From: Octopus sinensis
Taxonomy: Eukaryota
Direction: 5' to 3'
Assembly (NCBI RefSeq): GCF_006345805.1
Contig: NW_021835774.1
Coordinates: forward strand, 1-38,391
DNA: 38,391 nt
Shown: positions 1 through 31,354 of the stretch, one piece after another
How positions within the stretch are numbered: the stretch's first letter is position 1
Layout: each line of letters begins with the position of its first letter
Program-made: the position numbers and the translations under genes
Notes under the pieces: generated by a model
Database searches by the model: none
Told to the model about the DNA's origin: nothing
Seen by the model: the letters and a program-made list of their open reading frames with translations, nothing else

Positions 1-439
1 AGGGAGTAGAATGTGTGTCATTGTGACTACGTATGTGTATAGAACTGTGCAAGTGTGGAAGTATAACAGTGTTAGTGGGAGTGTGAGGGTTTGATGTATA
101 TGTATAATTGTTACATGGGTGGTGTGAATGTATGTGTGTGAGGAGGTGAGAGTGTATACAAGTGTGAGGGAGTAAAAGTATTCATGATGTATATAGTATG
201 GCATGAGCAAGGTGGGAGAAGTTGCTGATGTGTGCGCAAGTGCATAACAAAAGTATGTAGGAGTGTATAGCACATAATAAACAATTTCCAAGCATTGGGC
301 CACATGGAGCCAAAGGGAAATGACCCAAGACCCTTGGTAATATGCTGTGCTTGAGAAGAGACATTAGACGAAGTGAAATCATAGTCATGGCAGATATTGG
401 TGTCACACAATTTCCACCTGTGCCAATGGCACATAAAGA

Positions 440-600
440 CCACCCACTACACTCTCAGAGTGGTTGGCGTTAGGAAGGGCATCAAGCTGTAGAAATCATG
501 CCAAATCAGACTGGAATCCGGTGCAGCTACTCAGCTTATCAGTCCTGATCAATCCATGCCAGCATGGACAACTTACATTAGATGATGAAGACGATGACGA
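440..600 (+). mobile_element. SINE family D 3' portion, ending in a (GAT)n tail
   Basis: Contains ggttggcgttaggaagggcatc...gctgtagaaa...ccatgccagcatgg...gatgatga; the same body recurs at 9587, 18025, 21688, 24600 and 25518. Confidence 0.8.
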
Positions 601-900
601 TGATGATGATGCTGATGATGATGATGATGCTGCTGCTGCTGATGATGATGATGATGACGACGACGACGACTACTACAACGACAACGACGATGATGATGAT
701 TGATGATGCTGTGATGATGCTGATGATGATGCTGATGATGATGATGATGATACTGATGCTACAGATGCTGATGATGATGATGACAATGATGACGACGAGG
801 ATGATGACGACGATGATGATGACGACGAGGATGATGACGACGATGATGATGACGACGACGACGACAACAACACCGACGACGCCGACGAGGAGGAGAAGGA
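576..900. repeat. Expanded compound (GAT/GAC/GCT)n trinucleotide microsatellite
   Basis: Directly visible; continuous with the tail of the upstream SINE. Confidence 0.95.
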
Positions 901-1717
901 GGGAAATTTAGAAAATGGGAGAATATATACAAATTCCATGAAGAGAAGAGAAGTCTAAAGAAATTGGTTGAAGTTGCTAAAAATTACCATTTCATATCAT
1001 CAACTTCTCGTTTCCAAGTATTCTTTTCTGCTGGTGCCATGATTCTGATTAGAAGAGATCCCAATTGCCAGGAAGTGGCCCATGTAGTGTGGTTTCAAAG
1101 ACACATTTCACATGTGACTTGCAGGATCAGGCAACAAAACTGCAATGGACAACCATTGACCATAGCTTGAGCTGTGCCTTCTCAGCCAGTCCATCTGGCA
1201 TTGCTCTCTTTCACTCTTCCACCAGTTCAGCTGTTGAGAACATTTGTTTTGTTGTAGAGGACGTTTGCTATTTTTTCAAGGTATGCCCTTTAGATCTGCT
1301 CAGATTAGAGGAAACAGACCCTCTTTGTGAAAGTTTTAGCAGGGTCAGTCTTGCTACTAAATCAGAGATTCAGGTCTTTCTCTGAACGTGACTAGTCACC
1401 TAGCAGTATAAGAACCAGTATCTGAGGAGAGGCTACATGTTGTGCATCACTCAGGGAAGGGATACTACCTCTGCACTGTTTTTAAACCTGATAAAAATGA
1501 CACAACAATGGTAAAAGATCTGCACAGTTTGCCTGGGTGTCCAGAAGATGATATGAAACTGGTAACATCAAGGAAGGAGAAGATATGCATGAGATGAAGA
1601 GGTGAAAAGCATGATGTACACTCATATTATCGAAAGAAAAGGATGAAGAGAAGAGTGGAGAGTTAGGGGAATGAAACTGAAGATGAAGTAACGTGTGTGA
1701 ATGTGTATGTGTATGAG

Positions 1718-2070
1718 TCATCATCATCATTGTTCGACCGTGGTCGAGACAATGGAATTTACTATGTTGCACCAGACTTCACGGTCCATCAAGGCATTAC
1801 GGAGGTCCTGTTGCTGGATGCCTGTATCCCTGGAGATTACATCAGGGTAGGAGAGTGTGCGCCCTCTGGTATCGCGAGCAGATGGCTTCCAGAAGAGAAG
1901 AGTAGAAATTACCTCGTTTTCAGCTCTACAACAATGTCCAGCAAACTGGACTCTTCTACCTTTCACAAGAGATGACACAGTTGGTAGTTTCCCATATATT
2001 TGTACTTTGGTGGGATGATGCTTCCATGAGAGATTTTGAGTTCTCATAAGGACGCGAGTGTGGATGTCTG
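1718..2070 (-). mobile_element. 5'-truncated RTE-clade LINE: C-terminus of the RT ORF plus (TGA)n tail
   Basis: ORF 2047->1727 reads ...SWKHHPTKVQIYGKLPTVSSLVKGRRVQFAGHCCRAENEVISTLLFWKP..RGRTLSYPDVISRDTG..DLRNALMDREVW..IV, the typical post-RT RTE pattern (GH..R, LLW.P, GR, DR..W). The stop codon runs directly into tgatgatga; a terminal hairpin tcgacc-gt-ggtcga lies at 1734-1747. Confidence 0.85.
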
Positions 2071-2379
2071 CAAGCTAAAGAGTGAGTGGCTGTCAAGCAG
2101 AGGTGATAGGTGGAAGGGAAACGAAATGTGTGATTCAAAGCTGCCAAACAAAACAGGAGTGCCAAAGTGTAAAAGAATGCATGCATGTATGCGAGTGAGT
2201 GTGTCTGTGTATGTAAGCATTTATCTGTGAAGAGTAGACGTGTGTGGTTATGTTGTCTATGTGTCAGAGTACCAATGTGTGTGAGTGTATGAGTGTGTAT
2301 ATGTGCATATAAGTGAAAAATGTAAGATGGTTGGTAAACAGAGTTGAGTGTGTGAATATATGAAGAATAGGTGTGAGCA

Positions 2380-2711
<332 letters not shown>

Positions 2712-2814
2712 TGTGGGTGGGTAGATAAATACATACATTCATGCACATTTACATACATATGCATGCATGCTGAACAAAAGATGCAAGTCATAGAAGGAAT
2801 AAATCATATAAAAA

Positions 2815-3493
2815 TCTTGGCACAGACTATTGACAAGTTTATGACACCCCTACTTTGAAGGTTACCTCCATGCAAAACAAGAACAAGAGATCCCTGCCAA
2901 GAACCTACAGCACAAAAGGCAGAAAACATTGACAAATGACAAATGTAAGCTGAACAAAGTGAAAACTGAAAGTATCAATCATATTATTGCCAACTATAAG
3001 AGAATGTCTCTTAGATACTGCAGTGGCCAGAACAATCTGGAATAGAATAAGAATAAGGAAATAGCAGCACACAAAGTTGGCTATATTGAAATTTGAGAGT
3101 TAAAAGAATACTGGTGGAACTTGAAGATTAAAACAATCACCAAGTTAAGACACAGACAACCTGGTACTGCGTGGGACCATTAGAAAAAATTATGTTCTGT
3201 TGTGGAAATCAGCTAATCCCCACACACTAACATAGTCAGAAAAATACAGAAGTAAACAAGGACATTTATAAACCGGTGATAAGGAATTTGAAAATCCGGT
3301 CCCCAAGGTGATTTACAGTTTCATACCTATTATTACTGGAGCAAAAGTATATATACCAACCCATCTGGAGCAAAGTATGGCTGAATTTGGGTTTTTAGGG
3401 AGGGAGAAGAATTCCTTAATTCATACACTACAAATGATTGCAATATCTGGGACAATAAAGGTCTGCAAGACCTTCTTAACGTTTAAGGGATGA
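2815..3493 (+). mobile_element. Decayed 3' fragment of a non-LTR retrotransposon with restriction-like endonuclease (R2/NeSL/R4/Hero-type group)
   Basis: Across frameshifts: FEGYLHAKQEQEI, a degenerate CCHC knuckle KCKLNKVKTESINHII (2941-2988), EYWWNLKIKT..LRH (from 3106), VVEIS, FIPIITGA, and the terminal GTIKVCKTFLTFKG* (ORF 3308-3493). Confidence 0.75.
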
Positions 3494-3667
3494 TGAACAA
3501 AACAATAGCTGTTTCTTCACAATCTTGCTATACAGCAAGTGACCAGTCAAAATTCATGATGGAAGGAGGTCTTTACCCTTTCTAAAGAATATTTTACTTC
3601 GAGCTGTGCAGATAATACCAGACTGACTTGATGCCTCAACTTAATTTCCTAATTCAACTGAATCTTA

Positions 3668-3681
3668 ATTATTTATATATA

Positions 3682-3719
<38 letters not shown>

Positions 3720-3774
3720 CGCACACACACACACATATATATACATAATATATGTATATATACATATGTGTGTA

Positions 3775-3858
<84 letters not shown>

Positions 3859-3880
3859 ATACATATATTGTGTGTGTATA
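3668..3880. repeat. (TA)n/(CA)n/(TG)n compound microsatellite
   Basis: Directly visible. Confidence 0.95.
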
Positions 3881-3884
3881 CACT

Positions 3885-4032
3885 TAGTCGTATGGAGGTA
3901 ATTATCTCTGCTTGCCATGTGGGAGACCAGGAATTGATTCCTGCCTGAGAGGCATTTCTTCTTTCACTGGTGGTGCCTCAGCCTGGCCACAGCCTTAGGG
4001 CTGAAACATATAAAAGAATAAAAGAATAAAAG
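3885..4032 (+). mobile_element. Short SINE with a tRNA-Asp/Gly-like head and the shared '...ctgaaac..taaaagaataaaaga' tail
   Basis: gtcgtatggaggtaattatctctgcttgccatgtgggagaccaggaattgattcc aligns by eye to a tRNA-Asp/Gly body; it is followed by ggtgcctcagcctggccacag and an (AAAAGAAT)n tail like family A. Confidence 0.55.
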
Positions 4033-4072
4033 AACATACACTCATACACATACACATATCTATCTATACCTA

Positions 4073-4114
<42 letters not shown>

Positions 4115-4178
4115 TAATAATATTTTTATTACCAGTGGCCTAGTGTAAAAAAGTTAGTCAATAGACTATATATTATTC

Positions 4179-4616
4179 ATATAAAATACAGAGTACATCA
4201 AAACACATTAAGAGGCTTCCATCATAGGAATACTTTATGCTAGAAAGAACAGTTAAAACCCAAACCACTAATTAGGGATAAATTCTCGAAGGGAATGATA
4301 AATAGAAACATTTACCATCTAATTCCTGGACCATGGTTTCTGACTTATTTTAGTCGTTATCAACAGGGACGCCATAGATAGATTACTCTATGGCATCCCT
4401 GTTCATAATGACTTCGCCTGGTGGATAATAATTTTTATTTACTAAAATAAGTCAGAAACCATGGTCGAGGAATTAGATGATAAATGTTTTTATTTTTCAT
4501 TCCCTTCGAGAATTTATCCCTAATTAGTGGTTTGGACTTTAACTGTTCTTTCTAGCGTAAAGGATTCCTATGATGGAAGCCTCTTAATGTGTTTTAATGT
4601 ACTCTGTATTTTATAT
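4179..4616. mobile_element. Foldback/MITE-like element with 176-bp inverted arms
   Basis: 4179-4354 is the near-perfect reverse complement of 4441-4616; the spacer contains a second hairpin; flanks are TA-rich. Confidence 0.85.
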
Positions 4617-5099
4617 ATATATAACTATTGTTATATATATATAGCATGTATGTATGTATGTATATATTCATGAATACACAGAGGTGGAGGGATGGGATGA
4701 AGAGAGAGAATAGCAAGCACCACAAGTACATGAATATATGATGTGTTGAATTATGTGATACATGTTTTAAATGCATCTCTAACTTTAGTATAGAATTTTC
4801 TATAGAATGTATGTATAAAGTGTAATTGTATGGAAACATCCTCTGTTTGGAAATGCTGGCATTTTATACAATGACCTAAATTATTCTTCTTAATCCTCGA
4901 GAACAAGAATACTAGGCCAGATCATTTGGAGAGATTTCTAAAAATGGATGGATATTGCAAGCAGAATATTTCTAACAATAGTTAGAATTTTTTCTCCATT
5001 GCCACTTAAGATGTTGCTATGGCATTAGGTAAAGCCTTTTCTAACCACCCAACTTAGTGTTTGCAGATAGACTTATTCAGTGAAAATCCACCACATTAT

Positions 5100-5156
5100 G
5101 TATAAGTATGTGTAAGTGTGTGTATGTGTGTGTGAGCATGTGTGTATCTATCTATC

Positions 5157-5251
<95 letters not shown>

Positions 5252-5524
5252 TATATAAAAATATATTTGTATATGTATATACATACATATATATATATAT
5301 ACATGCATACGTACATACATTATATATAAATATATATATGTATGTACATAACATAGAAATAAATACATATATACATATATACATGTGTGTGTGGATGTGG
5401 GTGTGTGTATGCGTGATGTATATGTGTGTATGTATATTATATGTATATATATATATATACACATACATGTACATACATATATACATACACATATATACAT
5501 ATACATATATATATGTGTAATATA

Positions 5525-5558
<34 letters not shown>

Positions 5559-5610
5559 CTATATATATATATATATTATACACACACACATATATATATA
5601 ATATGTTGTA
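5100..5610. repeat. Compound (TG)n/(CT)n/(TA)n/(CATA)n microsatellite block
   Basis: Directly visible. Confidence 0.95.
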
Positions 5611-6254
5611 TATATGATAATGATATAAGAATAGAAAGCTTTTTGTACAACAATATTGGTTCTCCAGTTTTGGTAAAGAATACAACTAAGTGAGAAGTCC
5701 ATTTCTGTTTGTGTTTAAGGAAAAACAGTAATAAAAAAAAAAATTGAAAATAGATCAATACATAGAAGAAGCCTTTCAACAGAAAATTTTTAGCCATATT
5801 ATTTACTTTTTTTTAATCATTCTTTTATTTTACATATATTTTGTTATTGGTGTTAATCTAAGTATTGGGTGTAAAAATACATAGCTGCCAACACAAGAAG
5901 AATTTTGAAGTCTTATCCCTTTCCATGCTGGAATACAGATAATCCATTCTGTGACAGTCAAGACTAGACATCATTCCATGGCTGACTGGTTTTGTGTTGG
6001 GAAATATATTCAGCTGTAATAATTCAATAATTCTTGCCAAAATTAAATCTGCAGAATTTCGCATTCTCTGCTAGTTATGGAATGATGGATACAAAAGTGC
6101 AAAAGAAAGAAGCATTTCTTTTAGAATGAGAGAAAGAGAGAGAGAGAGAAAGAAGAGAGAGAGAGAGAGAGAGAAAGAAAGAGAGAGAGAAAGAGAGAGA
6201 ATGGTTGGCATATTTCCCAGAATTAGAAATGAGCCAATAGAGAAACCTTTAAAT

Positions 6255-6504
6255 CATTGGTTCTCAGCTGGGGTTTATATGGCCTTTAGGGGTCAATGTA
6301 AGATCTTCTTGTTAATATCTGCAATAAATTGGTTATAATTCTGCAATACACAAAATATTTATAAAATTTTTTAATACATTTTCTGATAATATTTAAGTAT
6401 AAAAATATCATAGAATTTTTAAGCATCAAATGGTTATGTGGATCCAGTAGAGTAAATAGGAACTAAAAGGGCCGAAGGGTAAAAAAAATGGTTGAGAACC
6501 ACTA
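6255..6504. mobile_element. hAT-type MITE
   Basis: Ends cattggttctcagc / gttgagaaccacta (CAGTGGTTCTCAAC-type TIR). Flanking 8-mers ctttaaat and cttaaaat match at 7/8, consistent with an 8-bp TSD. Confidence 0.75.
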
Positions 6505-6738
6505 CTTAAAATGGTTCTTTGACTTTTTAGAAATAACAAACCAAACCTCCTTCGATGAGACACTGAATGTTGTAGTCTTAGATATACAATGGCTGGGAGG
6601 CTTTTGATCATATGGCTTCATAATTAGGATTGATATGTAGCAAACAACAACAACCAGGTGAAGAGGAACTCTATGCAGTCACTTAACTTGCTAGAAACAG
6701 CAGCCAAATTTCTCTCAAGCAACACTTCACCATCTTAA

Positions 6739-6959
6739 CCCTTTAGCATTCAGATTACTCTGTTAAATGTAATACTTATTTATTCATTTTGTTTTGAATT
6801 AATCATGCCTTATGTTGGTAGCTTTGAGATTTCGATGGTGTGTTTGTTTAGATTTAGAATGACATTGTAGGGTAGGTGTAAGAGGCGGAATCTTGCCAGT
6901 TTGAACATAAAACAGCTGGAAAATTTGAGCTGGATATGGCCGGTTTAAACATTAAAGGG
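6739..6959. mobile_element. piggyBac-type MITE (221 bp)
   Basis: TTAA|CCCTTTA ... TAAAGGG|TTAA: TTAA target duplication and CCC/GGG termini. Confidence 0.8.
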
Positions 6960-7531
6960 TTAAACAAAGATAAAGAAGAATATGTTTGGGAATGTATTAA
7001 TACATATCTTCAAAAAAAGGGACGATTGTCACGGATGGAATGCCTTTGAAACAGCTGAGAGACTAGGTCAGTGGTTCCCATATTATAGTCCAGAGAATCC
7101 CTGGTGATTCACAAAGATTCAACAGAAAAGTATGAAGGAATGGTATCTGTGAGCTGTATTCCAAATTTTAAAAGACTGCTCATGTAAAATGCATAAATAA
7201 TTACATATAATTATTCAGTTACATAATTAATAATTACATATATCTATTTAGTTCCTTATGTCTTTCATTACAAAGATGAAAGTGGGAAAACGAGATTGTT
7301 GTTAGTTAATGAAATTAGTTTAATGTGCAAAATGTACTTTCAAAAGACTATGGACTAATGAGAAACTCATTGAAATACGAGGGGTCCTGGATAGTAGAAA
7401 GGTCAGTAGCAGGGGTCACTGACCTGTTACCAGTATTGTATTTTGTTCATAGTCAAGGCTGACAGTACCCAAGTCTGCATAGTTTTCTACGTAGACAAGT
7501 ACAGGTATATCAAATACCAAGTAATTAACAT

Positions 7532-7962
7532 AGGTACAGGTGTGATTGTGTGGAAAGAAGTTTGCTTCTCAACCACATGGTCCCAGGTTCAGTCCCACTG
7601 TGTAGAACCTTGGGCAAGTGTCTTCTGTTATAGCCAAGGTTGACCAGATCCTTGTGAGAGGACTTGGTAAATGGAAACTGAAAGAAGCCTGTTGTATGGG
7701 TGTGTGGGTGTGAGTGTGCATGTGTGTGTTTGAGCATGTGTGTGTGTGTGTGTCTTTTTGTATGTATTTGTCTCCCACCCCCACATGACAAGCAGTGTTG
7801 ACATGTTTACATCTCCGTAACTTAGCAGTTTGGCAAAAGTAACCAATAGAATAAATACTAGGCTTTACAGAAACATAAGTTCTGGGGATAATTCTTTTGA
7901 CTAAAATACTTCAAGGTGGTGTCCAGCATGGCCACTGTCCAATGACTGAACCAAAGAAAAGA
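7532..7962 (+). mobile_element. SINE family A, diverged full-length copy
   Basis: tRNA-like head (gtgtgg..ag...ggttcagtcccactg), ttgggcaagtgtcttct block, internal (GT)n, tail ccagcatggcc...aatgactgaa. Confidence 0.85.
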
Positions 7963-8029
7963 CCACAATAAAGATAATTCTTTGATCTATCAAAATTATC
8001 TTAGAGTTACCAAATCAAACAGGAAGAAG

Positions 8030-8362
8030 AAAGGCCCCTTTCCATCAGGAATGAGCATAGGATTGCACCTAGACGTTCCCCTCCAAGGCACAAGTCCAGG
8101 CAAGGTTGTTTTTTTTATGGGAGACCAAGAGTCGTCCATGCATACCAGCCTCCCTTCTCCATGCCTCCATGTTATCCAAGGGAAAGGCAAAGGCCGATAC
8201 AGCTTGGCGTCAGTGACATCACAAGTGATTTCTACAGCTGAGTGAACTGGAGTCACGTGAAATAAAGTGTCTTGCTCAAGAACACAACACACAGCCCAGT
8301 CCTGGAATCAAACTCACTCCCTCATGAGTGTGAGTCCAACATTCTAACCACTGAGCCATGTG
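8030..8362 (-). mobile_element. SINE family B (tRNA head plus CORE-like block)
   Basis: The reverse complement reads atggctcagtggttagaatg...gtgttgtgttcttgagcaagacactttatttcacg; homologous to 11403-11615. Confidence 0.85.
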
Positions 8363-8409
8363 ACAAATTAAGAACAGCTCCATATTAGAAGAGAAGATAA
8401 TCGCCAGAC

Positions 8410-8563
8410 CTTACAATCTGAATTCAAATGCCATTGGAATTGATTTTTGCTTTTCATCATTTTGAGTTTGATAAAATAACAACCAGTTGGCCACTGGGGT
8501 TGATGTAATTGACTCACCCTCTCACACAAAATTGCTGGCCTTGTGCCAAAATTTGAAACCAAC
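8410..8563 (+). mobile_element. SINE family C, 3' part
   Basis: ctgaattcaaat...gcttttcatc...gataaaataa..actggggttgatgtaattgact...ttgctggccttgtgccaaaatttgaaaccaa, matching the 33041-33667 units. Confidence 0.75.
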
Positions 8564-9170
8564 ATTATTCAGCAAGTTCTTCCAAACATTTACCAAAGTC
8601 GTATTCTTGAAATCCTTATATGCTTTAGGTAAGTGGAGACTTAATGTTGAAGGTTTGTAGATCCTGAGATGTAATGTTCCCTGCTTCACCTCCCATATCT
8701 TCATCCACATCATCTTCATCCTCCAACACAACCATTATTTTGTTCCCCAAAATCTTCCTTATACAGCCTCTTGCCAGCATTAATTATTCTCTAAGCCTGT
8801 GGCTGAATAACTGAAAATCTGTTAGGAGGCAAAAAAAGCCATCTTTACTTAAAAAACTTCTCAGCATTAGGGTAACCAAGAGTGTTGTCAAGACACAAAA
8901 TTACTTTTACATTATTAGATGAAATCTTCAGAACGTATTTCCCTTACTTTGTTTCTATTTTGTGTTTTGCTTTCTTCTGTCTTTCATATTGCTCCGGGGA
9001 ACAGCTCACTCACTCTTTCTCTGTCTCTCTCTCTCTCCTTCTCTCTCTATCTAGTTATCTAGCTATCTATGTATCTCTTTCTTTCTCTTACTATCTCTAT
9101 AAAAGCTATCCATTACGTCAGTAATCAAGAGAATCAGGGTTCATTAAACCAAAGGCTAATTGGATACATC

Positions 9171-9205
<35 letters not shown>

Positions 9206-9271
9206 TAGAGATAGATAGATATATGTGTGTATATGTGTGTGTATGTATGTATATATATATATGTGTGTGTG

Positions 9272-9321
<50 letters not shown>

Positions 9322-9586
9322 CTAGAGACAGCCTGACATCATCATTCTATTGAGCAAGCAGACAAAGTGTTGCTCTGTTCCTGCAGTTCCTCCCATTCTC
9401 AGATCTAGCTGTGTGGTTAAGAAACTCAATTTGCAACCACAATTTCACTCTGTGACAGCTTGTATAATTGTCTTGCACAATAGCTCCAAGTTAATTAATG
9501 CCTTTTGACAGAATTTTGTAGGCAGAAACTGAGTGGAAACCAATCATATGTAAGTGTATGTATGTATGCGTTTGTGTGTGTGTGTA

Positions 9587-9951
9587 TCATCATCATCATC
9601 ATCATCATCGTTTAACATCCGCTTTCCATGCTAGCATGGGTTGGACAGTTCGACCGCGGTCTGGGAAGCCAGGAGGCTGCACCAGGCCCAGTCTGATCTG
9701 GCAGTGTTTCTACAGCTGGATGCCCTTCCTAACGCCAACCACTCCGTGAGTATAGTGGGTGCTTTTTACATGCCACCGGCACAGGTGCCAGGTGAAGCTG
9801 GCAATGGCCATGATCGGTTGGTGCTTTTTACGTGCCACCAGCATGGAGGCCAGTCAAAGTGGCGCTGGCAATGGCCACGTTCGGATGGTTCATTTATGTG
9901 CCACCGGCACTGGTATCACAACTACAATTTCCATTGATTTTTGATCGATTT

Positions 9952-9953
<2 letters not shown>
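9587..9953 (-). mobile_element. SINE family D
   Basis: (CAT)n tail, ccatgctagcatgg palindrome, ggatgcccttcctaacgccaacc block, and internal tandem 'ttttacgtgccaccggca' subrepeats. Confidence 0.9.
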
Positions 9954-9991
<38 letters not shown>

Positions 9992-9993
<2 letters not shown>

Positions 9994-10370
9994 TGGGTAT
10001 TTATCGCCCGTGATGGTCTAATAAATTGTATCAAAAACTAATGCTGCTGATGATTTATAGATAGATATGTGATTATAATTGCATATTATGTTGATAAAGA
10101 AACAATTGTTCAGCATTAATCTATCTTTTCGTTGTATTTCGCTTTCCATACGTTGGAGGTAATGTTATTTCTTTTGTGGAAACAACTTCGGTGGCTATAC
10201 CAGAATAAGGAGCTATTTCTAGCACTAGAGTTAACCACTTAACGGTAACTCTCTTATATTTACGTATAAATTTGTATTGTCTCCCTGGTTTTTTATGTGC
10301 TAGGCCACTTGATGTTAAACTGATGGTATTATTAAATTAATATCTAATTTTTCACCCTCATTTATGAATG
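9992..10370 (+). mobile_element. Penelope-like pseudo-LTR/solo remnant embedded between (TA)n runs
   Basis: A 379-bp unique block bounded by (TA)n on both sides that carries a type I hammerhead motif. The Penelope assignment is inferred from the known hammerhead-PLE association. Confidence 0.6.
10039..10118 (+). ncRNA. Minimal type I hammerhead ribozyme
   Basis: Stem I taatgctg(10039-46)/cagcatta(10111-18), 8 bp; CTGATGA core 10047-53; stem II closed by tttat/ataaa; GAAA 10099-102; stem III AC-aatt-GT (palindrome ACAATTGT); cleavage triplet GUU with predicted cut at 10110|10111. Confidence 0.8.
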
Positions 10371-10699
10371 TATATATATATATATATTAAGGCAATCTTT
10401 ATATCCAACTTAATGTGGATGTTCTTTAAGAACACTAAATACTGCATTATTTACCTAGAGAGGACCTCTCATAAGGATGTATGTTCTGGTGCCTTTAGCA
10501 GATGATTCTCATCTGCCAATGATATATATATATGTGTGTGTGTGTGTTTATGCACCATACAGACATGACTTAATGCCATGGCAAAAAGAGGTCAATGGAA
10601 TACATACTATACTCTAGAAAAATATTTTATGTGGTCGTTTTGTTCAACTAAACACTTCAAGGGGATGCCCCTGCATCATGTATACTAATTTTCAAGTTA

Positions 10700-11000
10700 T
10701 TATCATTATAAAAAAAATTTCATTACCTGATCTGAATGCTTTTATCTAAACTATTTCTTGTCTCATCACAGACGAAACATATATTTTATTTCCTTGTCAA
10801 AGACTCTGTTACTTGATTGAGATATATTCGTGTGAACTAATTTTTTATTCCTATCATTTAAAAAAATTTTATGACCTGACCTGAATGTTTTTATATAAAC
10901 TATTTTTGACTCATCAGAGAAAATACATAAAACCTCAAAATTTTTTCTTATCATTGTCAAAGACTCTATCACTTGATTTGAATACATTTTTGTCAACTAC
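10700..11000. repeat. Two-copy diverged tandem duplication, period about 150 bp
   Basis: atcatt..aaaaaaatt..a.. cctga.ctgaatg.ttttat.taaactatt..tg.ctcatca.aga ... ttgtcaaagactct...acttgatt occurs at about 10700-10820 and again at about 10850-10980. Confidence 0.75.
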
Positions 11001-11153
11001 TTTTTTTTGACACCACAGAGAATACACAAAACCTTACACTTTACTTTTGAAAATCTTTTTAATTAAGTGAAACTGGTTAAGTTAATTAATACTTTTAAAA
11101 GACACCTGCATTTTCAAATTCTTTCCCTTATATCTTTACTCATGCGGTAACAC

Positions 11154-11204
<51 letters not shown>

Positions 11205-11324
11205 GTATGTATATATGTATATATATATGCATATATATAGATAGATAGATAGATAGATAGATGGATATAGATATATATACATATATATTTATACATATAT
11301 ATACATACATATATACATGCATAC

Positions 11325-11356
<32 letters not shown>

Positions 11357-11402
11357 AATATATACATATATATATATACACACATAGAGAGACACACACA
11401 TT

Positions 11403-11615
11403 ATGGCTTAGTAGTTAGAGTGTTGGGCTCACACTCATGAGGTAGTGAGTTCGATTCCCAGACCAGCTAGTGTGTTGTGCTCTTGAGCAAGACTCTTTAT
11501 TTCACGTTGCTCCAGTCCACTCAGCTGTAGAAATGAGTTGCAACATCACAGGTGCCAAGCTGTATCGTCCCCTTTGCCTTTCCCTTGGTTAATATTGTTG
11601 ATGTGGAGAGGGGTA
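11403..11615 (+). mobile_element. SINE family B, 3'-truncated
   Basis: A-box atggcttagtagttagag, B-box gagttcgattcc, CORE-like gtgttgtgctcttgagcaagac. Confidence 0.85.
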
Positions 11616-13588
11616 AGACCTCACTGCACTTATTGAAGTAATGATGAGGGAATCTCTGAGTAGATGCACAAAATTACAATAATATTATAACATGAATAAG
11701 AGTGAAAATTTAGAATAATTAAAAGGATAAATGACTGAGGCTGGTTAATTATTTAGAAATGTCTTCTGTATAAATATGAATTCACCAAGTGCTGAGGAAA
11801 TGATAATATAGCTTGATGTCTCTTTTAATAACTTCAGCTTCTACAATAATGTATCGTCATTTAGTAAACATTATCGTTTCCTACAGTATCATTATTTTTA
11901 ATAAGCATTTTGATGTGTGTTCTATTAAGTCAGTTGATAATAATTTAACTATTGTTGTTTTATGCAGCTGATGTCTCTGAGTAATTTCTTTCCGTTATTT
12001 ATGCTTTTTAATTTAATCACTGCTTTATTCTGCCTAACTTTCAGTTGATTTTAGCCACTAGAACTAAACAAATTTCAATCCAATTTTTAAATTACAAAGG
12101 AACTCTTTGCCCTTTTCCATGACATTTTGATGCTTTTAACAGCCATTCCTTGTTCTCTTGTATTCCCAATATCCCTAAATCTAATCTGCCATATCACATT
12201 CAAATATCATAATAGACAATGGTTATATAAAACAACAGCTGTGATAAAATTTAAGCACTATACATAACAAAAGCTATATAAAACAATAGCTATATGAAAT
12301 GATTGTTATATAAAACAATATCTGGCGGCTATTTGCTCAGTTTTCTCTCAAATTCATTCAAAATTCAAGATAATTTGTTCATTTATGAAGGATTTTTTTT
12401 TCAATAATATTTTCTCAACAAACTTCTCTTCCCATAACTCAAAGTTCATATTCCACTGATATAATACACAGTATTTTGTTATCTTTTGATGCTGGCATTT
12501 ATTATACGTTAGTCGGTTCTGCCCAGGAAATAATATTGAATTGACTTGTTAAACTGTAAATAAATTTCCTCCCAGGAATCTAAGCACTGATGGAAACATT
12601 GAATACAGATTCCTGGCCATACATACTTTACACACAAACAATTCTTGTTAATCTTTATTGTGCACATGTACATATCCTTATTGAGAGATACATATTGTAA
12701 TATTGATCTTAACTCAAATGGAACTAAATAGGATAGCACAAAACTCCCCCAACTCACTATGTTCTCATCTTTAGCTCATCTTATATTTATAAATTACTGA
12801 TGCATGTTTAGATGGAGAATAAAAAAACATCTTAATATTTTAAGTAGTTTTCTCATGAATAAATTATTAACAAGGTTTGCTTTCTACAAAATACAGCTCT
12901 TACACATCAATAAAGATTGCTAATATTTTATAGGGATCTGAATGGAATACATTTCAGCCATCTGAGAGATAATTCCTTTATAGCAATATAACATGAAAAA
13001 AATGCTAAATGGCATATTAACTAAACATATCACAACAAATTACTTTCATTCTATTATTTTCTGAAGCTTACCGCAAATAACAGTTTTGGAAATGTAACAT
13101 TTTCTATTTGGTCAATCAGATCAGATCTAACAGCGTGTCAGATCAAACCTTGGGTCACTGCTATTTTCGGTTCAAACTTCAGATCAGTGTATTCTCAAGT
13201 CTTTTCTAACCTCAGGCCCGTTCTAACCTCGGGTCAGATATAACTTCAGGCAAGACTAGCTTCAGTCGAATAATTCTCTCACAACATTTATCTGAGTCTT
13301 TTCCTTTATTATTTTTAAACAAATTTTTTTTTTTTGGTATCCTTTATTTGAGAAAAAAGAGGAAAGAGCAGGTCAACCTAGATATGACTTAGAGTAATAT
13401 TGAAGATTAAGGTTTTAAAAGAAAAACCCTGAACAGAAAAAGAAGGAGGGTTGGGTTCTAGAGGATTCCTGGTCTGAAGTAAAAGGATTAGTAAAGCAAT
13501 TCAGTATGAGGATCATACGAGACATACAAAAGATGAGGTATGGAAGAGAAGGGTGTATCAAGTCAGTCTGGGCTCAGATACTACATAG

Positions 13589-13994
13589 TTTATTCTTTTA
13601 TTCTTTTACTTGTTTCAGTCATTTGACTGCGGCCATGCTGGAGCACCGCCTTTAGTCGAGCAAATCGACCCCGGGACTTATTCTTTGTAAGCCCAGTACT
13701 TATTTTATCGTTCTCTTTTGCCGAACCGCTAAGTGACGGGGACGTAAACACACCAGCATCGGTCGTCAAGCAATGCTAGGGGGACAAACACAGACACACA
13801 AACACACACACATATATATATATATATATACGACAGGCTTCTTTCAGTTTCCGTCTACCAAATCCACTCACAAGGCATTGGTCGGCTCGGGGCTATAGCA
13901 GAAGACACTTGCCCAAGATGCCACGCAGTGGGACTGAACCCGGAACCATGTGGTTGGTTAGCAAGCTACTTACCACACAGCCACTCCTGCGCCT
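13589..13994 (-). mobile_element. SINE family A, young full-length copy
   Basis: Near-identical to 34291-34703 and to the reverse complement of 19515-19920 and 30104-30500. Confidence 0.95.
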
Positions 13995-14678
13995 TTGTTA
14001 GCAAGTTATTATAATAATGTTAAAAAAGACAGACAGGAGACACAGAACATTGAGAGGGTAGGTGTTTACTCCATGTTGCTGAATGAGTGAATGTCTGAAG
14101 GCTTCTTTACCAGTCCAGTGGTTTTATTTTGGATAAAGTTAAAATGTACGGTGTTATCTGGAAAATTTCGCTATCCTAAATATTTGAACAATAATCTAAT
14201 GTGAGTTATATTTGCAGATGGGTTAGTAACTGCTTTCACAGCTACTGAAATATATTGTTGCTTTGGGGAAATTTCTAGTCTTTGCCCCGGTTATTTTTAG
14301 AAATGATTGATGGATATGAAAGGTCAACAGAAATAATGAAGTCTGGCATTTTGCAGGGAGTTTGAGGGTTTTAGTTGTGTATTATTTACAAATAGGGAGG
14401 CTGTAGTATTTCATGTTTCTTTGATATTTATAGTGGTTATATGACTCATCACACACACTCACCACAGCCTACTCTTGCAGGAATTCTCTAAATGGATTTA
14501 ATTATGCATATACATTCTTTGAACACGTGGATAACCAAATCAATAGAAACCATGTTATTTAATAAATAATGTGTGGTCTAGATTTATTAGTTAGTCGGGC
14601 AGGGTGGGGGACGATTATTGTGCAGTGAAGAAATGCACTTTCAGCGGGTTTTAACTCATATCTCTTTACTTTCAACAG

Positions 14679-14778
14679 TTTGATTTCATTTTTGACAACA
14701 TCCCTTTGTCTCCTGAACTAGACATGATTTTCTCGGCTCCCTTCTACCTAATAATTACATTAAAGGGGAATCAGACTG
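14679..14778 (+). CDS. Candidate upstream exon of the thyroglobulin-domain gene (FDFIFDNIPLSPELDMIFSAPFYLIITLKGNQT-G|)
   Basis: Strong acceptor (ttttaac branch-like motif, then atctctttactttcaacAG), GTATTG donor, and only one fully open frame. It ends in phase 1, so it joins the next exon in frame (G+AA = Glu). No homology recognised. Confidence 0.35.
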
Positions 14779-14843
14779 GTATTGATTCTAGATATATTTC
14801 ATGAAATGTGCAATTTGTGATTTTGAAAACTTTTTAGCTTTTT

Positions 14844-15110
14844 GTTAACATGTAGTGTACTATTAAATACCGTATAACGGGAAACTATAATTTATAGTAT
14901 ATTATCGTTTAACAAGTAATGTACAATTATTTAACATATATTATTCTAGTATTTGTATTATGTATCATTTATAGTGTATATTATGTATAGTGGGCTATCA
15001 TTTAAATTTATAGTGTACTAATATTTAACATGTAGTGTACTACCATTAAACATATCATGTGCTGTAATTTAACATGTAGCATACTATGATTTAACTATAT
15101 AACATCTCAC
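14844..15110. repeat. Degenerate minisatellite built on tttaacatgtagtgtacta-like units
   Basis: The motif recurs several times with irregular spacing in the intron before 15376. Confidence 0.7.
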
Positions 15111-15375
15111 AAGCCATGTAGCCTTCATTTAAATATACATTCTACAGCATTTTGTGAAAACATGATATTTATTTTATAAAATTATGCGCCTGTTTATTTC
15201 CTTATAATGTTCAAGTATTCGACCCAAGACACCAAAATACTTAAGCAAGCAACACAAAGGCTGTAACAGAACATTTCAATTCCGGGATCTCTCATCCAGA
15301 TCCTTCTGCTGCCATAATTCATTTCTGTATTATTTCAATCTTTCACTTCTGATTACTATCATTGTGTAATTCCAG

Positions 15376-15581
15376 AATGTGCCCGTGATCGGCTAAAATA
15401 TCTGAACATGATAAAGGAGAGACCAGACGAGAAAAACGACCGAATATTCCTGTGCGAACGTAATGGAAATTATGCTAAAGTGCAATGTACTGGTTCGGTG
15501 TGTTACTGCGTCGATGAACAAGGGAATGAATTGAGAAGTAGCACAGTTCACATTTCAGAGACTGGTTCAGTGAAGTGTTAA
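15376..15581 (+). CDS. Exon encoding a complete thyroglobulin type-1 domain (six Cys), at the C-terminus of a probably secreted protein
   Basis: ttccAG|AA TGT..., translating to CARDRLKYLNMIKERPDEKNDRIFLCERNGNYAKVQCTGSVCYCVDEQGNELRSSTVHISETGSVKC*. Motifs C...C..nGnY..vQC....CYCVD..G...C match the Thyroglobulin_1 pattern. TAA (15579-81) is followed immediately by GTAAGT. Confidence 0.9.
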
Positions 15582-16454
15582 GTAAGTACTGGTCTCTCTC
15601 TCTCTCTTTCCTTTCCTGCATCTCCCAATCAATATTTTGATAGTGAGATCTTTGCTCTGATATCTGCTACTACATCAATGGACCTCCATGCCTGTTCGTA
15701 CTGGCACCAAAACACATTTACACTGGCAAACATATACCCTACCCTCATAACACCTGTTTCTACCAATAAAAACAATAATTTTTTCAAAATAACACTTTTC
15801 TTTTTTTTTTTCTTTTTTGGTTATATTCTTGCTTAGTTATTCCATGTTTTTATATCACTTTCAAATAATTTCACTATTCAGTAGCAGTTGATTTTATCTG
15901 ACAAGTTTAAGTTAATTATATGCCATTCTGTAGCATCCAACTTGTCTAAAGTAATTTGATAAATCTATTAGCAGGGAATCAAGACATCATTTTACACGGA
16001 AGCCTTACAGACACAGCCTTCAGCACTCACATCAAAGCACACCAATTCCACCATGATAATAACTATCATCTATATAGAAATTTTCATTCAGTAGCCAACT
16101 ATTGTAGCAGCGGAAACACTCCAATTTCCAAACCATTGTTACCATAGATTCACATTTCGAGAGAGAAGTACTTCTAATGACCTTCTTCTTCGTGTACAAA
16201 CATTAAATAGCCTTCAGTGAACAAAGCCAGATATCAATATGTGATACTCAATATAGCCTGTATGGAAGATGCTTGCATTATATTTTATGATAATATTTAA
16301 CGAATTAATTTCTTTTGATGAATCCTTTTGGAAATTTATCTATCTAGTTAACAGAAATTATTTTCGGAAGCCTGTACACTCACACACACACACATACACA
16401 CACACACATACACACCACATACATATTAATTGAAGCATACAGTATTATATATCC

Positions 16455-16518
16455 ATTATAGCCAACAATTTATATGTATTGTATATATATATTATATATT
16501 TGTATATATTATATATAA

Positions 16519-16606
<88 letters not shown>

Positions 16607-16895
16607 ATATATACATAATATATTACTATTATAGTATATATATATATTATATATTATATATTATATATATATATAATATATACATAATATATAATATATA
16701 TAGTATATATATATATATATATTATTATTATATATATATATAATATATACATAATATATAATATATATAGTATATATTATATATATAGATATATATATAT
16801 ATATATATTATTATTATATATTATATATAATAATACATATATATAATATATATATTATATATATATAATATATAATTATATGATATATATATATT

Positions 16896-16991
<96 letters not shown>

Positions 16992-17020
16992 GCATATATA
17001 TATCTATACAATATGTATAT
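16455..17020. repeat. Long (TA)n-based complex satellite
   Basis: Directly visible; includes a repeated ataatatatacataatat block. Confidence 0.95.
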
Positions 17021-17964: not shown

Positions 17965-18490
17965 GCAGAGTGAATAATAGCACATCAGACAAAATGCTCA
18001 GTGGTATTTCGTCCATCTTTACAATCATCATCATCATCCTCGTTTAACGTCCGTTTTCCGTGCTAGCATGGGTTGGACGGTTCGACCAGGGTCTGGGAAG
18101 CCAGCAGGCTGCACCAGGCTCCAGTCTGATCTGGCAGTGTTTCTACAGCTGGACGCCCTTCCTAACACCAACCACCCCGTAAGTGTGAGGCTGGCAGCGG
18201 CCACAATTGGTTGGTGCTTTTTATGTGCCACCAGCACAGAAGCCAGTCAAAGCAGCACTGGCATCGGCCACATTCAGATGGTGCTTTTTACGTGCCACCG
18301 GCACAGGTATCACAACTACAATTTCCATTTTATATTTATTTTGATGTTTCAAATTCCATGAAGGCTAACTTTGCCTTTCATCCTTTCCAGGTTGATAAAA
18401 TAAGTACCGGTTGAGCACTGGGGTCGATGTAACTGATTAAACTCCTTCCCTTGAAATTGCTGGCCTTGTGCCAAAATTTGACACCAATAT
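17965..18490 (+). mobile_element. SINE family C split by an inserted family D copy
   Basis: C 5' part 17965-18024 (aaaatgctcagtggtatttcgtcc) and C 3' part about 18346-18490 (ttcaaattcc...gcctttcatcc...aaaatttgacaccaat). Confidence 0.8.
18025..18345 (-). mobile_element. SINE family D nested in family C
   Basis: Same body as 9587-9953, starting with the (CAT)n tail. Confidence 0.9.
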
Positions 18491-19425: not shown

Positions 19426-20048
19426 GGGTAGCTAACTGGTTGAATGGTTAGCATGCTGGACAAAATGCTTAGTGGTGTTTTGTTCATCATTACATCTGAG
19501 TTCAAATTCCACCGAGGCGCAGGAGTGGCTGTGTGGTAAGTAGCTTGCTAACCAACCACATGGTTCCGGGTTCAGTCCCACTGCGTGGCATCTTGGGCAA
19601 GTGTCTTCTGCTATAGCCCCAGGCCGACCAATGCCTTGTGAGTGGATTTGGTAGACGGAAACTGAAAGAAGCCTGTCGTATATATGTATATATATATATG
19701 TGTGTGTGTGTTTGTGTGTCTGTGTTTGTCCCCTTAGCATTGCTTGACAACCGATGCTGGTGAGTTTATGTCTCCGTCACCTAGCGGTTCGGCAAAAGAG
19801 ACCGATAGAATAAGTACTGGGCTTACAAATAATAAGTGCCGGGGTCGAGTCTCGATTAAAGGCGGTGCTCCAGCATGGCCGCAGTCAAATGACTGAAACA
19901 AATAAAAGAGAGTAAAGAGAGAGGTCATTTTTGGCTTTTATCCTTTTGGGGTCGATAAAATAAGTACCAGCTGAGCACTGTGGTTAATGTAATTGACTTT
20001 GTCCCTTGCCCCAAATTACTAGCCTCATGCTAAAACTTGAAACCAATA
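19426..20048 (+). mobile_element. SINE family C split by an inserted family A copy
   Basis: C reads ...ttcaaattccaccg| [A element] |gaggtc...ggggtcgataaaataagtacc; the uninterrupted consensus is seen at 33041-33667. Confidence 0.85.
19515..19920 (+). mobile_element. SINE family A, young full-length copy nested in family C
   Basis: aggcgcaggagtggctgtgtggtaag ... gactgaaacaaataaaagagagtaaaga. Confidence 0.95.
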
Positions 20049-24323: not shown

Positions 24324-24847
24324 AGGTGCAGATGTGGCTGTGTGGTAAGAAGCCAGCTTCCCAACTATTTGGTTCAGGGTTCAATCCCACTGTGAAGCAT
24401 CTTAGACAAGTACCTTCTACTAAAGCCTCAGGCAAATGAAAGCCTCGTGAGTGGATTTAGTAAGCAGAAACTGAAAGAAGCCTGTCGTGTATATGTGTCT
24501 ATTGAGCGAAAACGCCTAAAGATCCACGCGGTTCCAGCCAGGGAAATGTAAATATATGCCAGCCTCGCCTGGCCCCCGTGCCGGCGGCACGAAAAAAAAC
24601 AAAAAACAAAAAAACATCCGTTCGTGGCCGTTTGCCAGCTCTGTCTGGCACCTGTGCAGGTGGCACGTAAAAAGCACCCACTACACTCACGGAGTGGTTG
24701 GCGTTAGGAAGGGCATCCAGCCGTAGAAACACTGCCAAATCTGACTGGGCCTGATGAAGCCTCCCGGCTTCACAGACCCCAGTTAAACCGTCCAACCCAT
24801 GCTAGCATGGAAAACAGATGCTAAATGATGATGATGATGATGATGAT
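24324..24847 (+). mobile_element. Chimeric SINE: family A head plus family D body and (GAT)n tail
   Basis: A-type head to aaactgaaagaagcctgtcg (about 24490), then attgagcgaaaacgcctaaag (E/V-type block), then the D body. Confidence 0.8.
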
Positions 24848-25471
24848 ATATATATATATGTAAATATTACATTATATAATTAGGGCTCAGTAAAATAATT
24901 TACTTTACCACACACTGAAACTTTTAGAAATAGCAGCCAAGAAGTTTTTTTATATAACATAAGTAACAAGGATGTCAAGGTATTAGTGCATTACAGCCAT
25001 TTCAGGTGGCTCCATTTAATCGAACAATGCAAGCATTACATCAATTTCAAATACACTGCCTTCTTTGGATGCATATGATCATACGGGTTTTCAACATACA
25101 GGATACTCCATTATAATTTTTTAGCAAATATTTCATCAGAATTAGAGAATAAAAGAATTACATGCTTGTTGCTATTATTGTAGCAGAATGAGCTTAGGGA
25201 GAAAATACTCCAATTATAATTTGGAGTCCTACCACAATATAGTATGAATGTGGCAACTTCCTTGGCATTAAGCAATATGCTTGGAGATCCCCATCAACTA
25301 TATGGTATGACAGAAACATATATGTAGGTTCTGTTTTTGTTTTTTATCTTAATTTTTTTAAGCTGTCAAATTCCAATCAATCTGTTTATTTATTTGTAAT
25401 GTGTTTTTAAAAAAAACAATCATCTTTTTACAAAATGCAAATAAATCAGTAATATCATCCATTTATTCTCC

Positions 25472-25517
<46 letters not shown>

Positions 25518-25518
<1 letters not shown>

Positions 25519-25900
25519 TCATCATCATCATCATTTAACGTTCGTTTTCCATGCTAGCATGGGTTGGACGGTTTGACCGGGGTCTGGTAAGCCATGAACG
25601 CTGCATCAGGCTCAAGTCTGGTTTGGCAGTGTTTCTAAAGCTGGATGCCCTTCCTAATGCCAACCACTCCATGAGTGTAGTGGGTGTTTTTTACGTGCCA
25701 CTGCCACAGGGCCAGAGGAGGCTGCCAAACAGCCAGTATATATATATGATAGGCTTCTTTCAGTTTCCATCTACCAAATCCACTCAAGGCTTTGATCAAC
25801 CTGAGGCTATAGTAGAAGACACTTGCCTAAGGTGCCATGCAGTAGGACTGAACACAGAACCATGTAACTGTGAAGCAAGCTTCTTCCCACACAGCCATGC
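25518..25900 (-). mobile_element. Chimeric SINE: family A head plus family D tail
   Basis: D tail/body 25518-25735 is contiguous with the A head 25745-25900, in one orientation. Confidence 0.8.
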
Positions 25901-26569: not shown

Positions 26570-27010
26570 CTTGCTTCAGTCGTTGAATTGTGGCCATGCT
26601 GGGGCACCTCCTTGAAGAATCTTAATCGAATGAACCAATCTCATACTCATTTACTCTTTTACTTGTTTCAGTCATTTGACTGTGGCCATGCTGGAGCACC
26701 GCCTTTAGCTGAGCAAATCAACCCCAAGACTTATTCTTTGGAAGCCTAGTACTTATTCTATCGGTCGCTTTTTTTGCCAAACTGCTAAGTTACAGGGACA
26801 TAAACACACCCCCACCGGTTGTCAAGCGATGTTGGTGGGACAAACACAGACACACAAACACACACACACATACATATATATATATTCATAAGCTTGATAC
26901 TTATTTTATTAGCCTCTTTTGCCAAACTGCTAAGTTACAGGCACATAAACACACGAACACCAGTTGTTAAGCAGTGGTGAACAACAAGCACAGACACAGA
27001 CACACACTCA
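26570..27010 (-). mobile_element. Cluster of family A 3' halves/tails
   Basis: Repeated tggccatgctgg.gcacc tail blocks and tttgccaaactgctaagttacagg blocks. Confidence 0.75.
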
Positions 27011-29770: not shown

Positions 29771-30103
29771 TGTAAAAATCTGTACAACTTTCCAGAAGTT
29801 TAGCATTTAAATATATATGTGAGCATGTCTAGATATGCAACTATACGCATGAGAATACATACATAAGGCAAAACATACAAATCTGTACACAAATACACAC
29901 AAACAAAAATACAATGTTGTTGATGTTGAAATTCCAATGAAGGAGCCTTGAATCTAGGTTAGAAACCAGCTCTTTCTCTATCAGCAAGAAATATTGAAAT
30001 GAAACTGAACAGCGATATACATACATACATACAACATACATACATACATACATACATACATACATACATACATACATACATACAAAAATATATACATACA
30101 TAT

Positions 30104-30500
30104 AGTCGCAGGAGTGGCTGTGAGGTAAGTAGCTTGCTTAGCAACCAAATGGTTCCGTGTTCATTCTCACTGCGTGGCACATTGGGCAAGTGTCTTCTAC
30201 TATAGCCTTGTGAGTGGATTTGGTAGATGGAAACTGAAAGAAGCCCGTCGTATATATGTATATATATATAAATGTATGTGTGTGTATATGTTTATATGTT
30301 TGCGTTTGTCCCCCCAACATCGCTTGACAACCGGTGCTGGTGTGTTTACTTCCCCGTAACCTAGCGGTTCGGCAACAGAGACCGATAGAATAAGTACTAG
30401 GCTTACAAAGAATAAGTCCTGGGGTCGATTTGCTCGACTAAAGGCGGTGCTCCAGTATGGTCACAGTCAAATGACTGAAACGAGTAAAAGAGTAAAAGAG
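30104..30500 (+). mobile_element. SINE family A, full length
   Basis: Same architecture as 19515-19920. A second, 5'-truncated copy of its 3' half lies at 30701-30892. Confidence 0.9.
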
Positions 30501-31354
30501 TATACATACAAACATACAAACAAAAATGGATACATACATGTTTCGTTTCCTTTACTGCGTTTTCTTAATTTACTTTAACCAGAACGGATTTTCGTCCCTT
30601 GGTCTTTCAATAAGTAACTAGTGTTTAGTGTGCATTTAGTTGTTAAGTGCAAGCTACAGCACCGTTCCTATAAATGAAGCACACATTTTTCACCGAGAAA
30701 CGCTTGACAACCGATGCTGGAGTGTTTACGTCCCGGTAACTTAGCGGTTCGGCAAAACAGACCGATAGAATAAGTACTATGCTTACAAAGAATAAGTCGT
30801 GGGGTCGATTTGGTCGGCTAAAGGCGGTGCTCCAGCATGGCCACAGTCAAATGACTGAAACAAGTAAAAGAGTAGAAAAGAGAGTAAAGAGTATATACCA
30901 CCCTGGCCATATCTCAGCCTACCGGCATTTACATGCGGCATATCTTTCGATATATGTGCTTGGTAATGTTTATTGCTCTATCGCAGCTTCTAAATCATAG
31001 TTGAATTTCTTACGTATGCATTTTCCAGGCATATTCACACACCGTGTGCGCGCTATAAGCATATAACTCGTGGATTGGCGATATGATTCAATTTTCGATC
31101 CCGTTCGGGTCAGTGATGTTGATATGCCACAAAAATGGTGAAGCGTCGATGTCCATCACTCTTAGATGGGATTAGAGGAGGAAAGTCATCTCGCCTTCCA
31201 TAACATCCAGGTGTTGTAACACCCTGCACTGTGAGAGAGTATTCTCCGTCTCTCCAAATCGCAGCCGACCGACAAATACACGAAGCGTATACGTTAAGCT
31301 TATGTGGTTGATGATGTTTACTACACTAGCGCAGCATCTCTTTCATATTTGAAT

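Follow-up and report, generated by a model that had tools for sequence, protein, structure and literature searches.

A conserved coding exon for a thyroglobulin type-1 domain on an Octopus sinensis contig

Contig NW_021835774.1 of Octopus sinensis (38,391 nt, analysed over its full length and called the window below) carries a short open frame at positions 15376–15581. A preliminary description, made from the letters alone, took this frame for an exon encoding a complete thyroglobulin type-1 (TY) domain, lying in otherwise non-coding DNA. Three questions follow: whether the frame is a genuine coding exon, to what gene it belongs, and what the encoded protein might do.

The exon, its conservation and its gene

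Direct reading of window positions 15200–15760 showed a pyrimidine-rich run that closes with ttccAG at 15370–15375, so providing the acceptor. The AA at 15376–15377 supplies the final two bases of a phase-1 split codon, and the 67-codon frame that follows translates to CARDRLKYLNMIKERPDEKNDRIFLCERNGNYAKVQCTGSVCYCVDEQGNELRSSTVHISETGSVKC. Its cysteines are spaced C-x24-C-x10-(Q)C-x4-C-Y-C-V-D-x20-C and include the motif Q-C-TGSV-C-Y-C-V-D. The splice-bounded frame, its six cysteines and the QC-x4-CYCVD motif had thus been placed exactly by the preliminary description, which also correctly noted that the ORF track had overlooked the exon: the ATG-initiated ORF at this position (15408–15581) is only 57 aa long, under the default of 60 aa, and lacks the first cysteine. 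Bacterial-style ORF lists overlook short, phase-shifted eukaryotic exons, and this one is an example. The features of the locus are collected in Table 1.

Table 1. Features of the window (NW_021835774.1) and coding exons of the corresponding Octopus bimaculoides locus (L001).
Feature	Position	Strand	Basis
3′ part of intron 3 of the two-TY gene	window 1–15375	+	tblastn with the 153-aa protein; collinearity with O. bimaculoides L001 67788–90446
Pyrimidine-rich tract and 3′ splice site (AG at 15374–15375)	window 15353–15375	+	direct sequence reading
Exon 4 (last coding exon), with the final two bases of the Lys86 codon, 67 further codons and the stop	window 15376–15581	+	translation, orthologue identity, phase
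Thyroglobulin type-1 domain, subtype 1A, six Cys (TY2)	window 15378–15578	+	Pfam PF00086, sequence matches, model, substitutions
Stop codon TAA, immediately 3′ of the sixth Cys	window 15579–15581	+	same position in O. bimaculoides and A. hians
GTAAGT, candidate 5′ splice site	window 15582–15587	+	perfect donor consensus
AATAAA, candidate poly(A) signal for an unspliced 3′ UTR	window 15765–15770	+	direct reading
Exon 1, signal peptide	L001 3001–3058		
Exon 2, first half of TY1	L001 19609–19722		
Exon 3, second half of TY1	L001 52807–52892 (about)		
Exon 4, all of TY2	L001 87238–87446		

The simplest objection is that the frame is open by chance, or is a decayed pseudo-exon that happens to resemble a TY domain. 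Stop-free frames of this length are indeed common here. At the base composition of the window, a run of 87 codons without a stop has a probability of about 0.0015 per start, and there are 612 stop-free segments of at least 35 aa, mostly of low complexity, so that the length of the open frame is by itself no evidence. A look-up of Logan contigs encoding exactly the 57-aa ORF, or the 153-aa O. bimaculoides protein described below, also found none. Real evidence comes from the domain match. The exon product matches Pfam Thyroglobulin_1 (PF00086) with E = 1.6e-11 and 43.9 bits, well above the cut-off of 20.6, over profile positions 1–61 of 67; the match still stands at about 1e-8 after correction for the 612 segments, and all six cysteines are intact.

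Conservation between species points the same way. The collinear blocks shared by the window and the O. bimaculoides locus are 81–95% identical (7–19% diverged over whole aligned blocks), and identity reaches 97% over 625 bases around the exon, the unique sequence being about 3% diverged. At these identities the window stems from a close relative of O. bimaculoides, and the possibility that it is the O. bimaculoides assembly itself was rejected. Within the 201 coding bases there are five substitutions, all of them transitions at third positions and synonymous; given 42 synonymous and 159 nonsynonymous sites, the probability of finding none nonsynonymous is about 4e-4. Compared with Argonauta hians, the exon shows 58 nucleotide differences, 43 of them at third positions, giving a pN of 0.11 with synonymous sites saturated. 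Purifying selection across species is therefore clear. Neither condition that the preliminary description named as refuting applies, since the domain matches Thyroglobulin_1 and the exon is under such selection. In the alignment of the three species, the CAG acceptor and the TAA stop occupy identical positions. When the whole window was compared with 23 kb of the A. hians locus by blastn, a single collinear unique match was found, at 15370–15587, the remaining matches being dispersed repeats. The exon stands out as a sharply delimited conserved island with its splice signals at the edges, and the segment is a real, conserved coding exon; the chance-frame reading is effectively refuted, and the probability left to it is vanishingly small.

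The 57-aa ORF falls into the same 90% cluster as XP_014772371.1, a 153-aa O. bimaculoides RefSeq protein named 'saxiphilin-like', and the exon product is 100% identical to residues 87–153 of this protein, from C87 on. The O. bimaculoides locus lies on chromosome CM046617.1 and has four coding exons over about 84 kb (Table 1), with introns that are all GT-AG and of compatible phases. Exon 3 ends with ...AAC TGT A|GTAAGT, and the AA at the start of exon 4 completes Lys86, so the intron splits the Lys86 codon of the inter-domain junction Cys85-Lys86-Cys87. A tblastn search of the window with the 153-aa protein mapped residues 86–153 only and found no other exon of the gene. Since these residues map to the window exon, and its phase fits exon 3, it is the last coding exon. 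The full-length architecture described here is taken from the orthologue models, exons 1–3 lying outside the window.

The 153-aa precursor has a hydrophobic N-terminus, read as a signal peptide on hydrophobicity and alignment only, followed by two TY domains. This agrees with the preliminary description, in which the exon was proposed to encode the C-terminal module of a small, probably secreted, cephalopod protein. The annotated orthologue of A. hians ('nidogen-2-like') is likewise 153 aa long, 84% identical overall, and alignable with the O. bimaculoides protein over its full length (100% coverage); its precomputed domain assignment is PF00086 only. The two proteins are orthologues, and their genes agree in the four-exon layout and in where the stop codon lies. 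The A. hians gene also hosts, within an intron and on the opposite strand, a gene for a 160-aa histone-fold protein (L011 20297–20779, minus strand, L011 being the A. hians locus).

The O. vulgaris model is different. CAI9734991.1 (P0013) has 117 aa and a gene range of about 122 kb; its exons 1–3 are 97% identical, and it ends in an unrelated 31-residue tail where the second TY domain is expected. This tail is not encoded in the window, and the O. vulgaris model has probably been given a wrong last exon. Exon 4 appears to be missing from at least one public octopus annotation. The description of the exon as 'hidden' holds in part: it is absent from the ORF list and from CAI9734991.1, but it is present in the RefSeq annotation of O. 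bimaculoides and in that of A. hians. The same protein appears in both, so automatic annotation had already captured the feature, and the protein is an ordinary member of the TY/thyropin superfamily.

The automatic names are less satisfactory. An identity as saxiphilin was rejected, as the 153 aa contain no transferrin lobes and Pfam gives Thyroglobulin_1 only; nidogen was rejected because NIDO/G2F, EGF and LDL-receptor YWTD modules are all lacking from the 153 aa. With no transferrin or nidogen domains and a TY match only, 'saxiphilin-like' and 'nidogen-2-like' are misnomers. An IGFBP identity was likewise rejected, there being no N-terminal IB domain and two TY domains rather than one. The significance of the finding is small beyond annotation hygiene and the misleading automatic names given to a two-domain thyropin.

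A homologue of 155 aa (P0017), 53% identical and of the same architecture, is encoded as an uninterrupted CDS on nine Logan contigs of about 1 kb. These contigs are evidently transcripts, because untranslated flanks are found on both sides of the CDS, so that in this homologue the architecture is carried on a single mRNA; they show no nucleotide similarity to the octopus loci. Word-indexed homologue searches with the 67-aa exon product and with the 155-aa P0017 each returned only the query itself.

Domain, predicted fold and family

The proposal that the exon encodes a full type-1A thyroglobulin domain was borne out by several lines of evidence. Besides the Pfam match, the exon product matched thyroglobulin repeats in sequence, as well as saxiphilin and the p41 fragment of the invariant chain. 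The whole 153-aa protein contains two PF00086 stretches (83.6 bits together) and no other domain; the two match each other internally, by tblastn, with 39% identity over 36 residues. In the motif C-[W/Y/F]-C-V, the octopus domain carries Tyr in place of the usual Trp, as does one human thyroglobulin repeat. This CYCV variant, pointed out in the preliminary description as a departure from the CWCV consensus, is typical of the family, the aromatic residue being Tyr or Phe throughout an alignment of 12 sequences.

AlphaFold2, run with an alignment of 12 rows, predicted a helix and a beta-hairpin in each domain (mean pLDDT 85, pTM 0.73). In the second domain the predicted helix spans residues 86–100 and the strands residues 121–124 and 127–131, at pLDDT of about 83–93. 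Foldseek searches of the PDB with this model retrieved the TY pair of saxiphilin (E 3e-8), thyroglobulin, and 1ICF_I, the p41 fragment from its complex with cathepsin L (TM 0.70, rmsd 1.9 Å, 56 columns), on which the predicted octopus fold superposes overall. The second TY domain, for which the exon supplies the complete code, is in the model a wedge of N-terminal helix and beta-hairpin. The p41 fragment is a single TY-1A domain encoded by one exon. It shares the wedge fold with the octopus model and is the structural prototype of three-loop cathepsin L binding; it differs in lying within a membrane chaperone, in having CWCV rather than CYCV, in its shorter L1 loop, and in its vertebrate-specific context.

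An exhaustive HMMER search gave 755 matches at E<=0.001. Among the best were proteins of 146–172 aa with the same two-TY layout, including members from Tubulanus polymorphus (a nemertean, 'equistatin-like'), Owenia fusiformis (an annelid) and Mactra antiquata (a bivalve). The bivalve has two similar proteins, with consecutive accessions, on one contig. Several unnamed metagenomic or transcriptomic sequences are further short members. In the 12-sequence alignment, all cysteines of the second domain are invariant, as are A88, G116, N117, G125, G135, V143 and I145.

The junction between the domains is a recurrent feature of the short proteins. Among 156 retrieved sequences, made up of 150 search hits and six cluster members of these hits, 58 show the pattern C-x-C-A-[RQK]. 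Of the 24 that do not exceed 200 aa, 21 show it, and 19 end on the final cysteine. As judged from the orthologue models, the octopus protein belongs to this short two-domain class, having a predicted signal peptide, exactly two TY domains, a length of no more than 180 aa, and the C85-K86-C87 junction.

The cephalopod proteins stand apart in the L1 loop of the second domain (residues 96–108, window ~15405–15443), which exceeds that of the other members by six residues and is highly charged (IKERPDEKND). At the L1 position, x-G-x-x-G is found in the nemertean, annelid and bivalve members, whereas the cephalopod sequences lack G-x-x-G.

When the family profile was compared with solved structures, the tandem TY domains of saxiphilin and equistatin gave the best matches (E ~1e-18 to 1e-20), and 8R6T, the C-terminal domain of the thyropin IrThy, was also recovered (E 4.6e-5). 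Relatives from the HMMER search include P0050, P0074, P0091 and P0069. In some of the longer ones, the two-TY unit is C-terminal and is preceded, by Pfam, by an amfpi-1 protease-inhibitor domain or a Reeler domain.

Possible function of the protein

The closest characterised architecture is that of IrThy, from the saliva of Ixodes ricinus, in which a signal peptide of 19 residues precedes a mature protein of 147 aa with two type-1A TY domains in succession; the cysteines of its Cys79-Lys80-Cys81 segment pair across the domains (PMC10889554). It is a competitive inhibitor of cathepsins V, K and L, with activity in both domains, and does not inhibit aspartic or serine proteases (PMC10889554). 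The IrThy authors note that mammals lack short two-domain thyropins, which are common among invertebrates, and describe the scientific understanding of invertebrate thyropins as limited (PMC10889554).

The octopus protein resembles IrThy in its predicted signal peptide followed by only two consecutive type-1A TY domains (~135–147 aa mature), in the Cys-Lys-Cys junction, and in a C-terminal domain of ~67–68 residues that closes on the last cysteine. There are also differences. The C-terminal domain of IrThy has an atypical cysteine pattern with an inter-loop D2 disulfide, whereas the octopus domain has the canonical QC...C-Y-C-V, carries no extra cysteine in L3, and is not of the inter-loop D2 kind. 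The sequence relationship is distant, and the octopus L1 is longer and charged.

Tandem TY-1A domains also occur in saxiphilin and equistatin, for which inhibition of papain and cathepsin L is documented. Saxiphilin carries its TY pair within a transferrin scaffold of ~850 aa, and equistatin, from a sea anemone, has three TY domains; in neither is a C-x-C junction reported, and neither protein ends on the last cysteine of its second domain. The TY domains of the p41 fragment, equistatin and saxiphilin inhibit papain-like enzymes, and in the p41–cathepsin L structure three loops of a disulfide-stapled wedge fill the active-site cleft (PMC7863939).

Given the match in architecture to IrThy and the binding mode of p41 with cathepsin L, the most likely function is that of a secreted, competitive inhibitor of papain-like cysteine endopeptidases, an assignment made by analogy and held with moderate confidence. 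The relatives in which the two-TY unit is joined to the amfpi-1 inhibitor module fit this reading. The product would be a protein of ~15 kDa with two consecutive thyroglobulin type-1A domains, that is, a short two-domain thyropin. Each domain would form a small disulfide-stapled wedge, with loop L1 at the N-terminal helix and loops L2 and L3 at the beta-hairpin around the C-Y-C-V core, and the two would be linked through the Cys-Lys-Cys junction. Papain-like cysteine endopeptidases of family C1A, for instance cathepsin L, would be blocked competitively and reversibly by the entry of loops L1–L3 into their active-site cleft. We infer secretion, inhibitory activity, target class and disulfide connectivity alike.

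Many TY domains, such as those of nidogen, the IGFBPs and EpCAM/Trop2, are without demonstrated inhibitory activity (PMC7863939), and the octopus domain could likewise be a non-inhibitory module that binds a growth factor, a matrix component or a glycosaminoglycan. The family profile also matches the C-terminal domains of IGFBP-1 to -6 and of EpCAM/Trop2, and the enlarged, charged L1 loop departs from that of other members. One of the relatives, P0069, has an N-terminal cysteine-rich stretch with a GCGCC-like motif that recalls, by eye, the N-terminal domains of IGFBPs, and no IB domain was matched in it by Pfam. Against this, the octopus protein has neither an IGFBP N-terminal domain nor any other partner domain, and the nearest characterised architecture, that of IrThy, is an inhibitor. 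A purely binding role is considered somewhat unlikely.

A variation on the inhibitor reading concerns the class of protease. Single TY domains have been found to target cathepsin D or other classes (references in PMC7693380; PMC7863939), so that an aspartic target may be envisaged, by analogy with domain 2 of equistatin, or a metallo- or serine protease, which has been reported for the testicans, and the two octopus domains are divergent from one another. IrThy, however, is inert on aspartic and serine proteases, and no sequence feature examined suggests a non-cysteine target; inhibition of another catalytic class is thus quite unlikely.

The protein might instead be a salivary or venom component with a non-protease target in prey, for example voltage-gated sodium channels. 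A spider venom protein with two TY domains is a close homologue of IrThy and a reported sodium-channel toxin (PMC10889554), and a TY protein is present in the posterior salivary gland proteome of O. vulgaris (PMC7693380). The possibility that the latter comes from the same gene was rejected on length and best match: it is a product of a different gene, of ~228–244 aa, with its best match in Pomacea (42.5%). Because the salivary protein is a different and longer one, a salivary role for the octopus two-domain protein is unsupported. The family is, moreover, kept in a non-venomous annelid and bivalve, and also in a nemertean, and selection on the exon is strongly purifying rather than diversifying. 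A venom function is accordingly rated very unlikely.

Two features of the second domain count against the preferred reading, as an inhibitor of papain-like cysteine endopeptidases. The longer, charged cephalopod L1, without G-x-x-G, could narrow or abolish protease binding, and the canonical cysteine spacing differs from that of the IrThy C-terminal domain. A more far-reaching proposal is that the second domain, inherited from an ancient spiralian two-domain thyropin, was adapted in cephalopods to a different target, and that the gene has in addition a conserved intron after the stop codon. Taken together this is unlikely; if the re-tooling were true, the target might be, for example, a prey or pathogen protease, or a non-protease ligand. 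A cephalopod thyropin with an altered L1 would be a reasonable but routine target for protease-inhibitor biochemistry.

The 3′ end and the surrounding sequence

A GTAAGT hexamer abuts the stop codon in both octopus genomes and lies 1 nt past it in A. hians (L011 65137–65142), though the flanking sequences there do not align. The chance expectation for a conserved GTAAGT is about 1 in 1,000, and the conservation island stops at 15587, the last base of the hexamer. Its presence after the stop in all three species suggests a conserved donor and, therefore, a 3′-UTR intron directly past the stop. Nonsense-mediated decay is not expected when the stop lies at the very end of the exon. If such an intron is present, splicing of the 3′ UTR could regulate the transcript.

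Alternatively, the UTR may be unspliced and end past the AATAAA downstream of the exon (Table 1). This hexamer is identical in O. bimaculoides, and no counterpart was seen within ~500 nt of the A. hians stop. A comparison with 10 kb of A. hians flanking sequence gave no conserved downstream 3′-UTR exon, only repeats.

The surroundings of the exon were assessed by tblastn with the 153-aa protein, by Pfam searches of ten longer open frames, and by repeat matches. Over this coverage they yielded only repeats and a decayed transposon, in keeping with the non-coding landscape of the preliminary description. The transposon is of the Tc1/mariner type and occupies window positions 35919–36898 on the minus strand; its parts lie in different frames, namely an HTH_23/Sleeping-Beauty-like HTH at 36572–36898 and a DDE_3 catalytic fragment at 35919–36305.

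A SINE-like repeat of ~250–400 bp occurs in both orientations, at 13594–13989, 19521–19925, 26643–26890, 30093–30504, 30701–30884 and 34296–34697. The O. bimaculoides locus also contains it in many copies, and A. hians has related ones. A second repeat family is located at about 9583–9790, 18027–18178, 24624–24862 and 25509–25710. Simple repeats include a (TA)n-rich microsatellite tract of ~550 bp (16450–17000), the GC fraction being 0.18 in the 16001–17000 bin, and a GAT/GAC-type trinucleotide tract at about 580–950, which gives rise to long poly-Asp and poly-Ser open frames.
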